A stretch of 64,000 bases of DNA from Octopus sinensis (lineage: Eukaryota). The stretch's first letter is position 1. Every line of letters begins with the position of its first letter. The DNA lies in NCBI RefSeq assembly GCF_006345805.1, contig NC_043005.1, positions 13,826,001 through 13,890,000 of the forward strand, written 5' to 3'. The position numbers and the translations under genes are program-made. Below, in pieces: positions 19,101-28,100 of the stretch. The notes under the pieces were generated by a model that worked only from the letters and a program-made list of their open reading frames with translations, was not told the origin of the DNA and did no database searches.

Positions 19101-22100
19101 ACGGAGTCGTCCTTGTGTTGTATTACCGGATGATAGTTCATAATACAACTTGTCTTTCGTGAACTTCTCGTCTTTCATGCAGTGTATATGGCTGGCCCAG
19201 CCAGTGGAAGCGTAATTATTGCAGTAGGATGAGAAGGCCGAGGTTTCCAACACCTCATTACCGAAGAATGACTAGGAGTTACTTCGTCTACGCTTGGAAG
19301 TGTGACTGGTAATGGGTGCACGGAAAACAGTAGTTTCAGAGATTTTTGTGTTGTTGTTAACCCGCTACCCGATATTCTACATCTCTCTCTCTCTCTCTCT
19401 CTCTTCTCTCTCTCTCTCTCTCTTTCTCTCTGTTTACCCTTCTTGGTAGTCAGGAAGCAAGACCATTTGTTTAGGGATTATAGCGGATCACCAAAATAGG
19501 TGATGGACTACTTTGATACCCTTTTTCTCAAAATTCAGTTTCTACTAGATTCAACTTAACTTTAAGCTCCCCTCAGACAATGCACAGCAAAAAGGCTAAA
19601 AATTACGATAATTTCAGTTCCCATGAGGACCCAATTCACTTCACCGAAAATACAAATACATTCCAGAAAACCACAAGCGTCAACACTTTTAAGCATCTAA
19701 ACAAAGTTTTCAATCGATCTTATACAAATTTTATTGGAATTACAGTGACTTGAGCGGCAATAAAGACATGGTCTGTGGATGTCATTTACCAGAACTTATC
19801 GAGCATATAAGTGAAACTGACAACAGGAGTGTGACTGTCTTGGGCGACTGTATAGGGGCTGGCACCACCCCAATCAAGTTTACCCATACACAGAAACCTT
19901 CTCACTGTATTAGTAAGTGAAATCTTCCTTAAATCTGTTGCAATCGTTTCTTCTCTTTATACGATCTACAGAAATTCACAATGAAAATTCCATATATTTA
20001 ATATAATTTCCTCTGTTATATATTATCTCTGTGCCAGTTGGCACAGCATACTTATCAATCACATATGCGAGTGTTTATACTTTACTCCTTGCATTTTACG
20101 TCAAGATTTTAGAAATCGTATTTATACTTAGTGTAGTTCTTATCTGTATCTCTCTAACATATATAGATATATTTCGTTTTCAACCTTTATTTTTTCTGAT
20201 GTTCGCTTGCTTACGCACTTTTTGAATTAGACAATTACTAGTTACTTAACAAATTTGACTATCCTTCCCTTCCGTAACATTTGTATAATTCCATCTGACT
20301 TGAAACTTCTCAACTATACTCCAGAGATTATATACATGCATACATGCATGTAAACATGCATGCATGTATACATACAAGCATATATGCATACATGCATGCA
20401 TACATACATACATACATACATACATCATACATGCATCATATATACATACATACATACACACATGCATGCATACATACATACATACATACATACATACATA
20501 CACATATACATACATCATACATACATACATGCATACATACATACATACAGGCATGCATGCAACCACACTCACAGTGATTCTCTGTGTATCTTTGTTTGTG
20601 TGTGTGTTTGTGTGTGTGTGTGTGTGTGTGTGTGTGTGTGTGTGTGTGTGTGTGTGTGTGTGTGTGTGTGTGTGTGTGTTTGTACTTGTGTATATATTAT
20701 CTAGATAACGCTGCAATTTGATAACTTACCAGTTATAGGTTTTATAAGGGAGGTCACTCTTAAATATAGAATCAATACTTCAGAATTACGTCCCTTTTTG
20801 GGATTATTTCAACATATTAATGACTTGATCTGACACAGGAATTTAAAATAAAGAGAACAAGCGTCTAACCTGCCTTTTTATGCCTTTCTTATGCTTTTCC
20901 AAATTGTATCAGTGATGTAACTGCAACATCCTAGTGACGTGACTGCAAAGCGAATGTTTACAGACTTCATCTGAAAATTTGTTTATAAGCTTAATTAAGT
21001 ATTGGCTCCCACACTCACATATGCATTTCATTTACTGAAACTACACATTTTCTATGATTTCTATATATGGTACATGTTGAGCTCTGAACTTTTCTTACAT
21101 TCATGAACTTATACATACTTATATGTTTCTTTTTATTGTGCAGCTCAAACGATTAATTATGAGAGCATACACTGCCACGTATGTTCAAAGATCAACTGCA
21201 CAAATCCGATGAACTGCCAAGGTTCAAAGGTAAACAGATCTTCTTTTCTCACCTTCTTCTATGATACATCACAATCAAAACTGCCTAGATATTGATAGTC
21301 TTCTTTGAACTTCATGTAATGTTCCCTTTGTCGAAAAATATTTCGATATCTATTCAAATCTTTCTGACAATTAAAATCGTCTGCATCATAGTTCATGTGA
21401 ATTTATTAACGCTTTGCTCTAAAACCATTTTGAATTTGTAACTTCTAGAGATAAAATGCAACTTTAACGAATTAAGTTTGTAATTAGTCTCATCAGCCGG
21501 TTAAAAACAAAGGTGACTTCCTGTAGTCAGGTCATTGAAACACACACACGCATACACACACACATACATACATACATACATACATACATACATACATACA
21601 TACATACATACATACACGTACATGCATACACACGTACATACATACATACATACTTACATACATACATACATACATACATACATACATACATACAATACAT
21701 ACATACATACAATACATACATACATACATACATACACATACATACATTATTATGGCTGTCCCCTCGTTATCGAGTATGGCCATTGCACGAAGCTTAACTG
21801 TTACTGGTGCTGTGATCGAATGTGACTTTTTAGCCCAGCTAAAGATCTACAATGTCTTGTACAGAATTGGCAGCTAAAACCTTTACCAGTAAAAAGCCGG
21901 CTGTAGTTGTAACTGGGCTTCATGTACCTTTGCATGCCGCTTAAGTCCTCCTGCCGAGTTACACTCTCTTCCACATGCCCGACAGATATGATTAGTATGG
22001 TGTGTTACACCACCACCAGTGGCCAGGTTGTCACTCATCTGTCTCGCTTTATGACTACGAAGATGACTCTTGAGTCCAGCTTTACTGAGGCAGGGTCTTG

Positions 22101-25100: not shown

Positions 25101-28100
25101 GACCAAATGTGTTAGAGCAACTTTGCTGTGGCGGGATTTTCCCCATTTTTTTTAAACCATAGCCTTCCAAATGATGGGGTTGGGTTGGGTTGGGTGGGGG
25201 CATCGTTATATGAGAAAAAGTTTGAAACTGTTTTACAACCCCCACTCCCTCATCATCCCACTCCGTACCTATTTCGGTGGTGGTGGTGGTGGTGGATGTG
25301 GTGGTGGTGGTGATGGTATATGATTTTTGTTTTAATATTTATCGCTGCAGGCTGCATGTATGACCACAATAACAAAGCATGATGAACCCATGGTTGAAAA
25401 AAATTGTAGCACAGAGGAAAATTGCGTTGAAGCTGAGAGAAGGAATGTGTCGAATTGCAATAATTGGACTTCTGGCAATTCTTGTGTTACTTGTTGCCAC
25501 AAAGATTTATGTAACCAGAAGGTTTTCAGAGGTAAGTTTTGTTCGTTTTCTTTTTTTCCCCTTTTTTCTTACAATCGCACTCGAGTTGTTAGAGTAGTAG
25601 TAGTAGCAGTAGTAGTAGTAGTAGTAGTAGTAGTAGTAGTAGTAGTAGTAGTAGTAGTAGTAGTAGTAGTAGTAGTGGCAGCAGCAGCAGCAGTAGTAGT
25701 AGTAGTAGTAATAGTAGTAGTAGTAGTAGTAGTAGTGGCAGCAGCAGCAGCAGCAGCAGCAGTAGTAGTAGTAGTAGTAGCAGCAGCATCAGTAGCAGTA
25801 GTAGTAGTAGTAATAGTAGTAATAGTAGTAGTAGTAGTAGTAGCAGCAGCAGCAGTAGTAGTAGTAGTAGTAGTAGTAGTAGTAGTAGTAGTAGTAGTAG
25901 TAGTAGCAGCAGTAGTAGTAGTAGTAGTAGTAGTAGTAGTAGTAGCAGCAGCAGCAGCAGCAGCAGTAGCAGTAGTAGTAGTAGTAGTAGTAGTAGTAGT
26001 AGTAGTAGTAGTGGTAGTAGTAGTAGTAGTAGTAGTAGTAGTAGTAGTAGCAGCAGCAGCAGCAGCAGTAGTAGTAGTAGTAGTAGGGAGAAATATTATG
26101 TAATGATAGGAATGGGATTTGCCCAATCTATAGGAACAAGTCATGGAACACTATAGAAAGGACAAAAAAGAAAATAGGGAAGGCCAACTCTTGGTATGAT
26201 AGCCATAAATACCAGAGTGTCATGTTCGTTGACACCACCCCTGGAGGTGAACTAGCGTACCGCTTTAGAAGGACCCTAGATAAACTTAAACTAAGAATTA
26301 AGGTTGTTGAAAAGCCAGGCAACCCTATCAGATCTATAATTGGTAGAAGCTATCCTTTTAGTAGAACTCTCTGTACGGATAACTATTGCACTGTATGTAG
26401 ATTTAGCCCACAAACGAACTGTAAAGCCAGAAATGTGGTCTATAGTATAAGATGTATAGAGGGACGATGCAGTAACAAGACAGTAACATACGTAGGGGAA
26501 ACTGCAAGAAGCATGGTGAGCGGGTGAATGAACATTGGAGACAACTCAAGGAAGGTAAAAGCTCATCGATTCTGTACCAACACGCCGAACAAGAACACGG
26601 GGGATCAATCAATAACATAGAGATTAAGATATTGTCCACACATAGAACAGATGCAACAATTAGACAAATTACAGAAGCTACACATATAATAGAAAATAAA
26701 CCTAGCCTGAATAGAAAACTAGAATGGAGCAATAGCGCACACCACAACATATGACAATAGTGGATCCTGCAAACATAATAAATACACAGGTAATTAAAGA
26801 AATAGAAATGAATATCTATATATATGTATATGTGTATATATATGTATATGTATATGTGTATATATGTGTGTATATATGTATATATATATATATGTATATG
26901 TATGTATATATATATATGTATATGTATATTCTTTTTTTTTTTTTTTTCGATTAGATTTATTATTATTATTACTAATATTGTTGTTATACATACATACAAG
27001 CATATGTAATGATAATAATGGGTGGATGTAAACACATGAACAAAATTAGAACAAAAGCAACAACAACAAAAACAAAATACAAATTACAAGAATGTATATA
27101 ACCAGAAGATACAAATATTACAGGCATCCCCCCCACACACACACTAAATAAACATAGACGCACATAGAGATATAAGCATGCGCAAATGAAGACATACAAT
27201 AGAAATACAAAATGGCTGACGGTTAGTAAGGAGAGACACAAGTAAGTGAGAAGAAAACAAAGGACCACTGATGCGGTCACAGGAGTGTGACGAAAGAACT
27301 TTGGCCGAAATAAGATTAAGATTAATGTAAAAATAAATATCACTGAAGCAAAATAACACCAATATATAGTGCGTGTGTTTTTATTGGCTAAACTGGCAAT
27401 ATGACCATTCCGAAATATAACAATATCTGTTTCAACACACGACTTCACATAAAAAATCTTGCACAACAAATATTTAAACGTATATATATATATATATATA
27501 TATATATATATGCACACACACACGCACACATACTAACACACACACAAACATAAATATATATATATATATGTGTGTGTGTGTGTGTGTGTGCATATATATG
27601 CACGCACTTTATACAAATATATTTTCATATAATATATACTTATGTATATACATACATATAAATATATACACAGACATACATAGATATCCATACATATATA
27701 TGTATATGCATGTATATATATTTATACATGCTTATATGTATATATGTATATGAATATATACATATACATACATATATATATATATATATATAGACCCGCT
27801 CTCTTCAACATTACACTAGGACACGTCAAAACAGAAACTGACCACACAAAATTCAAGAAGTCTTTGGACAAATTCCTTCAAACAGTCCCGGAAAAACTAC
27901 CCACACCCGGATATGTCTCCGCAAACAATAACTCTCTGCTCGAATGGGCCTCGGTGCCCAAATCCTGAATTGAAAGACTTTGCCAGGTGGTGCTACTAAG
28001 TTAGACATGGCCTGGGCCAATACTGGCCAAAACCTTTCTAAGTTATTCGAAGTTATACATATATGTATATGTACGTATATACATATGTATATATGTATGT

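Follow-up and report, generated by a model that had tools for sequence, protein, structure and literature searches.

What is a cysteine-rich segment, encoded by two small exons, doing in the ectodomain of an octopus G protein-coupled receptor (GPCR), and is it a genuine protein domain? The question is raised by a stretch of 64,000 nucleotides (nt) of Octopus sinensis DNA (NCBI RefSeq assembly GCF_006345805.1, contig NC_043005.1, positions 13,826,001 to 13,890,000 of the forward strand). This whole stretch is called the window hereafter, and positions are counted from its first letter. Our analysis makes it probable that the two exons encode one LU (Ly6/uPAR, three-finger) domain of the six-disulfide Lynx2/LYPD6 subtype, fixed in the N-terminal fragment of an adhesion GPCR (aGPCR), with the leucine-rich repeat (LRR) and LU head as the binding end. 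The same degree of confidence is given to the window gene being a member of an octopus-specific, tandemly clustered aGPCR expansion that RefSeq lists under the names ADGRA3, ADGRG6-like, decorin-like and slit-like.

The two exons, with Cys numbered 1-12 in their order along the domain, are:

21144..21229 (+), LU exon a, 86 nt, N-terminus and loop I, Cys 1-4; acceptor ttattgtgcag, donor AAG/gtaaac; identified by splice sites, Pfam and PDB match
25351..25531 (+), LU exon b, 181 nt, loops II and III, Cys 5-12, CCHKDLCN; acceptor tcgctgcag, donor GAG/gtaagt; identified by splice sites, Pfam, phmmer and tblastn

Joined, they comprise 267 nt or 89 codons, and the translation contains exactly 12 Cys and has CCHKDLCN at its C-terminus. 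Direct reading and translation therefore bear out the first-pass annotation of this DNA, which had described a 12-Cys domain in two exons with a terminal CCxxDxCN. Both LU signatures are present, namely the N-terminal xxCxxC (IHCHVC) and the C-terminal CCxxxxCN (CCHKDLCN). The 267-nt module is flanked by phase-1 introns on either side, and a phase-1/phase-1 flanking is the classic layout of a shuffled extracellular module. There is no second LU module in the window: among 2688 six-frame open reading frames (ORFs), a family LU profile (which contains the window's own LU sequence) matches these two exons only, the next match having an expectation value (E) of 0.38.

Database comparisons place the segment among three-finger proteins. 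The isolated LU peptide matches Pfam Toxin_TOLIP with 23.0 bits (cut-off 21.2, E 1.4e-4) over model positions 2-72 of 72. Against the PDB, phmmer finds human Lynx1 (2l03) as the best match, full length and at E 2.1e-5, with all LU Cys aligned to Lynx1 Cys; the ectodomains of ACVR1 and TGFBR1 and LYPD1 follow. A profile built from 18 LU sequences (alignment A1) retrieves human Lynx2/LYPD1 (6zss) as its best PDB match (E 6.4e-6) and aligns 12 of 12 Cys with those of Lynx2, while ACVR1, SLURP-1, Lynx1 and LYPD6 appear at lower ranks. Within A1, 11 of the 12 Cys columns are invariant and so are the CC and CN columns. The Asn before Cys8 (N54, in loop III by alignment) is invariant as well, and the window protein has an N-x-S/T sequon at this residue. 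The LU domains of paralogues, taken in isolation, mostly lie under the Pfam cut-offs. Those that do match belong mostly to three-finger families (Activin_recp, Toxin_TOLIP, UPAR_LY6_2), one of them passing Activin_recp with 21.4 bits vs 20.9, and full-length Pfam scans of the paralogues P0042, P0034 and P0002 gave no LU match. Judged by its sequence, the 12-Cys segment is confirmed as a genuine LU domain and not a chance Cys-rich stretch; the three-finger assignment made at first sight is supported by the PDB matches, the Cys alignment and a Pfam match close to its cut-off.

Two other parts of the early description did not survive. The 12 Cys had been taken as a sign of an unusual extra disulfide, and a novelty of this pattern was rejected because it is already that of Lynx2 and LYPD6: besides four invariant disulfides, Lynx2, LYPD6 and LYPD6B have a further one in each of loops I and III (PMC7582953), and all 12 Cys of the octopus domain stand in register with those of human Lynx2. 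By transfer from Lynx2, the predicted bonds are C1-C5, C2-C3 (loop I), C4-C6, C7-C10, C8-C9 (loop III) and C11-C12. The label "quiver-like" was likewise abandoned. None of the searches run returned a QVR or sleepless match, and Lynx2 and Lynx1 come nearest, followed by the ectodomains of ALK/TGF-beta type I receptors. As a separate observation, a protein of the sea cucumber Holothuria leucospilota (KAJ8019844.1, P0038) has four LU domains in tandem that share this 12-Cys subtype and match CD59/Toxin_TOLIP in Pfam. They are joined by Thr-rich mucin-like linkers, and the C-terminal region is labelled an Apple domain by UniRef. P0038 shows that the 12-Cys LU subtype is widespread in echinoderms outside GPCRs.

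Structure prediction points in the same direction. The AlphaFold2 (AF2) model was made on the LU domain of the homologue P0031 (about 63-64% identical to the window LU) using the family alignment, and it shows four long strands plus a last one, with a helix in loop III (pLDDT 67.7, pTM 0.56). In a Foldseek comparison of this model with the PDB, the top ~27 matches are nearly all three-finger proteins (ALK1, Lynx2, uPAR, TGFBR1, PSCA and snake toxins), with the best TM-score (0.58/0.60) to Lynx2. The support for a three-finger fold is consistent, although moderate only.

Is the domain really part of a receptor? An exon chain was assembled from scans for ORFs, splice sites and reading phase, together with hydropathy and tblastn searches using homologues. 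It consists of 19 plus-strand exons, all with AG/GT boundaries, in a single stop-free frame of 792 amino acids (aa), and its domain order is three LRRs, LRRCT, LU, a ferredoxin-like domain, HormR, GAIN/GPS and transmembrane helices (TM) 1-3. The gene extends past both window ends, TM4-7 lying outside the window. Besides the two LU exons, the chain comprises:

1081..1152 (+), LRR exon, 72 nt; its first nt completes a codon and 2 nt remain at its end; AG/GT, open frame
3202..3273 (+), LRR exon, 72 nt, phase as in the first LRR exon; phase and motif scan
18598..18669 (+), LRR exon, 72 nt, phase as in the first LRR exon; tblastn match of P0002
19746..19912 (+), LRRCT exon (…SHCI); tblastn of octopus paralogues; leaves 1 nt fitting the phase of LU exon a
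28729..28808 (+), ferredoxin-like domain exon 1; profile match, splice sites, colinear with P0031
32898..32950 (+), ferredoxin-like domain exon 2; sequence and profile scan
34328..34479 (+), ferredoxin-like domain exon 3; tblastn and sequence
36965..37076 (+), HormR (HRM) exon 1; tblastn, Pfam HRM under cut-off
39758..39909 (+), HormR exon 2; tblastn, Pfam HRM under cut-off
42330..42549 (+), GAIN subdomain A exon; scan and tblastn
48352..48523 (+), GAIN exon; scan and tblastn
53589..53729 (+), GAIN subdomain B exon; scan and tblastn
54503..54643 (+), GAIN subdomain B exon; scan and tblastn
55664..55804 (+), GPS exon, CSCNHL↓TSFAIL; Pfam GPS 2.9e-15, tblastn
56663..56763 (+), TM1 exon; scan and tblastn, 7tm_2 on the joined model
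60314..60431 (+), TM2 exon; scan and tblastn
63687..63831 (+), TM3 exon, the last in the window; Pfam and tblastn

On the joined model Pfam reports LRR_8 (3.3e-17), GPS (2e-13) and, over TM1-3, 7tm_2 (8e-15). HormR alone gives 20.7 bits (E 5.7e-4) against an HRM cut-off of 26.2, and the Pfam GAIN model gives 13 bits only on the window GAIN. The GPS exon (Pfam 2.9e-15) has an intact HL↓T/S consensus, where autoproteolysis is predicted, followed directly by TSFAIL, the start of the tethered agonist. The LU exons are in phase with the LRRCT exon upstream and with the exons downstream, and homologues carry a complete seven-transmembrane (7TM) region. Among solved structures, ADGRG2, ADGRG6 and ADGRG3 come closest to the GAIN and 7TM part (E ~1e-30); the ADGRG6 ectodomain (6v55) aligns over HormR and GAIN, with E 2.4e-17 for the GAIN region, and a precomputed Pfam match in the family is GAIN_ADGRA3. 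By its domain sequences the receptor is an aGPCR. The earlier claim that the LU domain is embedded in a GPCR ectodomain is accordingly upheld by the GPS match, the 7tm_2 match and the in-phase chain of 19 exons.

Relatives of the gene supply evidence from outside the locus. A phmmer search of LU exon b against 1.84e9 representative proteins gave 13 matches. The best (E 3.7e-18, 71% identity) is P0031 of O. bimaculoides (A0A0L8HEX5), whose cluster mate XP_014773211.1 bears the RefSeq name "adhesion G protein-coupled receptor A3". P0031/XP_014773211.1 matches the 792-aa model colinearly over its whole length with 76% identity, LU domain and the three following exons included, and therefore provides an independent validation of the exon chain. 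With a 625-aa query ~30 proteins were recovered, 33-51% identical to the query and named "ADGRG6-like" or "ADGRG2-like"; all but one are from O. bimaculoides, O. sinensis and O. vulgaris. Protein homologue searches with the LU peptide alone, or with a concatenate of HormR, GPS and TM3, found nothing. Two of the ~30 octopus-only paralogues lie on the same 94.6-Mb chromosome. In at least 15 octopus family members an LU domain directly follows LRRCT, with 12 Cys in nearly all. In the paralogue P0001 (locus L002) the LU domain is likewise split into two exons by an intron in the same place, two residues before Cys5. P0034 (1155 aa, 32% identical) is encoded by one ORF on a 4201-nt Logan contig (L001), which covers LRR, LRRCT, LU and the remaining domains through 7TM. 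We regard this contig as a spliced transcript because its ORF is uninterrupted and has 5' and 3' untranslated regions. Absence of the LU exons from spliced transcripts had been named beforehand as an outcome that would refute the domain's place in the receptor; for the family, they are present in the P0034 transcript contig and in the annotated relatives.

Some LU-bearing members run under the names of unrelated LRR proteins, such as "decorin-like" for P0041 and P0047 (O. bimaculoides) and "slit homolog 1-like" for P0039 (O. sinensis). These three and P0029 are short models without 7TM, which stop behind LRR and LU or, in some cases, behind the ferredoxin-like domain. Such short LRR-LU entries may be annotation fragments or true secreted LRR-LU isoforms.

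What, then, would the domain do? Between the window gene and its closest relative, identity is 62% in the LRR part and 64% in the LU domain (57% without Cys), against 80-90% in the ferredoxin-like domain, HormR, GAIN and TM1-3. We infer that the LU domain is a fast-diverging binding module of the N-terminal fragment. In the mechanism that we propose, the LRR-LU head would be the ligand- or partner-binding end at the distal N-terminal fragment, and the rigid disulfide core would present the three variable LU loops as contact surfaces. Once a partner is engaged in trans or in cis, the HormR-GAIN stalk would relay the signal to the tethered agonist of the cleaved GPS (TSFAIL…) and from there to the 7TM region, as in other aGPCRs. 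Beside this binding view stand the conserved Cys framework, the position of LU at the distal end next to the LRR cap, and the intact GPS with TSFAIL.

A number of points weigh against this explanation. Binding of a ligand, channel or co-receptor by LU is purely inferred for every family member, and the faster divergence of LRR and LU could mean relaxed constraint instead of diversifying ligand specificity. In the full-length model the Toxin_TOLIP score drops to 20.4-20.5 bits, under the cut-off of 21.2, and UPAR_LY6 reaches 17.3 bits against a cut-off of 24.8 with the isolated peptide. The AF2 model is of moderate confidence only and was built on a homologue with 63% identity. The Foldseek comparison, which the first-pass annotation had asked for, agrees with a three-finger fold in what it ranks at the top, but no PDB match of the P0031 LU model reaches E <= 0.001. 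Finally, the splice junctions at this locus are predicted from consensus sites, from reading phase and from the colinear order in homologues.

The last point bears on a reading in which the receptor mRNA would not contain the LU exons at all, these being either a nested small Ly6 gene or dead exons within an intron. The junctions are indeed predictions, and the 4.1-kb LU intron consists of microsatellites and repeat debris. A start codon or a signal-peptide exon is missing, however, both outer boundaries are in phase with LRRCT and the downstream exons, the same layout recurs in ~15 annotated octopus proteins and one transcript contig, and the exon structure is kept in P0001; we consider this reading effectively excluded. 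A more serious, albeit unlikely, alternative takes LU and the ferredoxin-like domain as a rigid stalk without a ligand of its own, which holds the LRR head at a given height and orientation. In ADGRA2/3 an Ig domain has their place between LRRCT and HormR, drift is seen in the loops but not in the strictly conserved Cys framework, and the protein P0007 lacks the neighbouring ferredoxin-like domain, which suggests a variable stalk length. Against such a spacer, none of the paralogues and isoforms examined keeps LRRCT and loses LU; moreover, the loop III sequon position is conserved (N54 invariant in A1), and LU domains elsewhere are nearly always binders.

A different kind of binding is assumed if the domain is a tethered prototoxin, i.e. 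a Lynx2-like LU that acts in cis or trans on nicotinic-type channels, perhaps the chemotactile receptors of the suckers, and thereby couples channels to the aGPCR. The closest solved LU relatives, Lynx2 and Lynx1, are modulators of nicotinic acetylcholine receptors, an octopus aGPCR expansion is expressed in axial nerve cord, suckers and skin (PMC6408891), and a Drosophila glycosylphosphatidylinositol (GPI)-anchored Ly6 protein has been reported as a cis ligand of a GPCR (bioRxiv 10.64898/2026.06.29.735401). Against this, identity to the Lynx proteins is low and mostly confined to the Cys framework, and the expression data describe the published group, of which the window gene is only a candidate member. 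Since the partners of LU domains are highly diverse, the target of such a domain cannot be read from its nearest sequence neighbour either, and we rate a prototoxin role as quite unlikely. Less probable again is the broader idea that the LU domains of the family are tethered Lynx-like modules docking on nicotinic-type channels, including the sucker chemotactile receptors, or built-in cis ligands of the receptor itself. If it were true, contact chemosensation or cholinergic signalling would be physically tied to G-protein signalling, and the fast-diverging LRR-LU heads would give each paralogue its own partner.

The ~95-aa domain between LU and HormR deserves separate mention. Its exons (28729-28808, 32898-32950 and 34328-34479, all plus strand) total 285 nt and are in frame, and no Pfam model matches it. 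The AF2 model of the homologous segment (pLDDT 78.5) has the order beta-alpha-beta-beta-alpha-beta, which is the topology of SEA domains. A SEA identity was examined since it would tie the family to ADGRG6. Sequence profile searches against the PDB gave no link to SEA, and Foldseek returned generic ferredoxin-like folds only. A direct join of LU exon b to HormR was dropped as the main product when tblastn and profile search revealed the three intervening exons. That junction is also in phase, and it is the arrangement of the O. vulgaris paralogue protein P0007, in which LU is joined directly to HormR without the ferredoxin-like domain. Skipping the ferredoxin-like exons would preserve the frame because they total 285 nt, and given this total and the absence of the domain from P0007, it may be an alternatively spliced cassette. 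In O. vulgaris P0005 (879 aa) the ferredoxin-like plus HormR unit occurs three times in tandem before GAIN, which suggests an internal duplication or else an assembly or annotation artefact.

The non-coding surroundings are those of AT-rich, microsatellite-laden eukaryotic DNA. The intron between the LU exons measures 4.1 kb and is made up of microsatellites and repeat debris. At 21804-22302 (-) it includes ORF fragments whose C2H2 zinc-finger motifs reach 21.7 bits with Pfam zf-met and 21.4 bits with zf-C2H2_4. These fragments sit between (CATA)n and (CA)n microsatellites and resemble remains of a mobile element or of a decayed zinc-finger gene. A short repeat (…GGCGAAGTCGACTTCGGCGGAATTTGAACTAAGAAC…) has two copies in the LU intron (23440-23540 and 23640-23730, plus strand) and related copies in other introns (near 17092-17328 and 43143-43430), and looks like an interspersed repeat of the short interspersed nuclear element (SINE) type. 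Downstream of LU exon b, a ~500-bp (GTA)n/(GCA)n microsatellite (25580-26090, plus strand) begins ~50 nt 3' of the donor, and read-through of it extends the exon b frame as poly-Val/Ala (ORF 25336-26100); the tract could influence splicing or confuse gene callers. Intronic mobile-element remnants are found at 62598-63182 (-), 8730-9416 (+), 26087-26751 (+) and 50119-51156 (+). Among the mobile-element ORFs, one has a zf-RVT reverse-transcriptase zinc-binding motif (E 1e-5) and one a weak GIY-YIG match (E 0.002), and two groups appear Penelope-like and mariner-like by eye, without a Pfam match.

The biology of aGPCRs is organised by the domains of their N-terminal fragments. A Lynx2-type LU as a constant module of an octopus-specific aGPCR expansion, located in its fastest-diverging part, seems to be unreported so far; LU was probably overlooked in these receptors because the domains lie at or under Pfam thresholds. 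Its recognition in dozens of octopus receptors allows misleading names (ADGRG6-like, decorin-like, slit-like) to be corrected, and the LRR-LU head offers a testable handle for de-orphanising receptors of arms, suckers and skin. In the accessible part of the 2026 aGPCR consortium review Ly6, uPAR and three-finger domains are not mentioned. Ritschard et al. described an octopus-only, tandemly clustered aGPCR "group 3", whose members combine GPS and 7TM, in some cases also LRR, and show expression in axial nerve cord, suckers and skin; the domains reported were LRR, GPS, 7TM and one Death domain, but no LU (Ritschard et al. 2019, PMC6408891). We liken this group to the ~30 octopus-only relatives of the window gene; the comparison is one of groups, with this particular gene as a candidate member.

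Among vertebrate receptors, ADGRA2 and ADGRA3 (GPR124/GPR125) share the order LRR (72-nt exons), LRRCT, HormR, GAIN/GPS and 7TM. Vertebrate ADGRA2/3 have an Ig domain between LRRCT and HormR, and it is here that they differ, since the octopus receptor has LU and the ferredoxin-like domain in its place. ADGRG6 (GPR126) has CUB, PTX, SEA, HormR and GAIN. The octopus protein lacks CUB and PTX, and its domain before HormR has a SEA-type topology but gave no SEA match by sequence profile or Foldseek. Pfam scans of the full-length model yielded no match to Ig, and scans of the model none to CUB or pentraxin (PTX) domains. Because the ADGRA-like domain order, the RefSeq name of the closest homologue and the GAIN_ADGRA3 match stand against ADGRG matches in the solved 7TM and GAIN structures, and Ig, CUB and PTX are absent, we file the receptor under neither ADGRA nor ADGRG; the RefSeq "G6-like" names seem to rest on the similarity of HormR, GAIN and 7TM.

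As for the LU domain itself, Lynx2/LYPD1 (6zss) and LYPD6/6B agree with it in having a single LU, the 12-Cys register, the loop III helix (predicted here) and a CCxxxLCN end. They are small GPI-anchored proteins, however, whereas the octopus LU, situated inside a receptor of >1000 aa, lacks its own signal peptide and GPI signal, and identity outside the Cys framework is low. In typical Ly6 genes the LU domain is encoded by two exons (PMC4839075), as it is in octopus. The type I receptors for TGF-beta and activin, which give the second-best sequence and fold matches, also have a three-finger domain built into a transmembrane receptor. In contrast to the octopus protein, in which LU is one of six modules, they are single-pass kinases with LU as the whole ectodomain, 10 Cys and a different extra disulfide.

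The fusion of LU to an aGPCR is not new, for there is a starfish precedent. Asterias rubens LyAr2 (XP_033635706.1, "ADGRG2-like", LU at 224-305) and XP_033635539.1 ("ADGRG6-like") as well as Acanthaster planci LyAp2 are LU-bearing aGPCRs whose LU was reported to be closest to human Lynx2 or LYPD6 (PMC9410279, PMC11595613). They resemble the octopus receptor in having one LU ~200 residues into the ectodomain, in their ADGRG2- or ADGRG6-like RefSeq names and in their nearest LU relative. The starfish proteins are automated models mentioned in passing, and the comparison with octopus is one by description only; an orthology of the two is plausible. Unlike the starfish receptors, the octopus family is a lineage-specific expansion, and together the two cases suggest that the combination of LU and aGPCR may be old in bilaterians.

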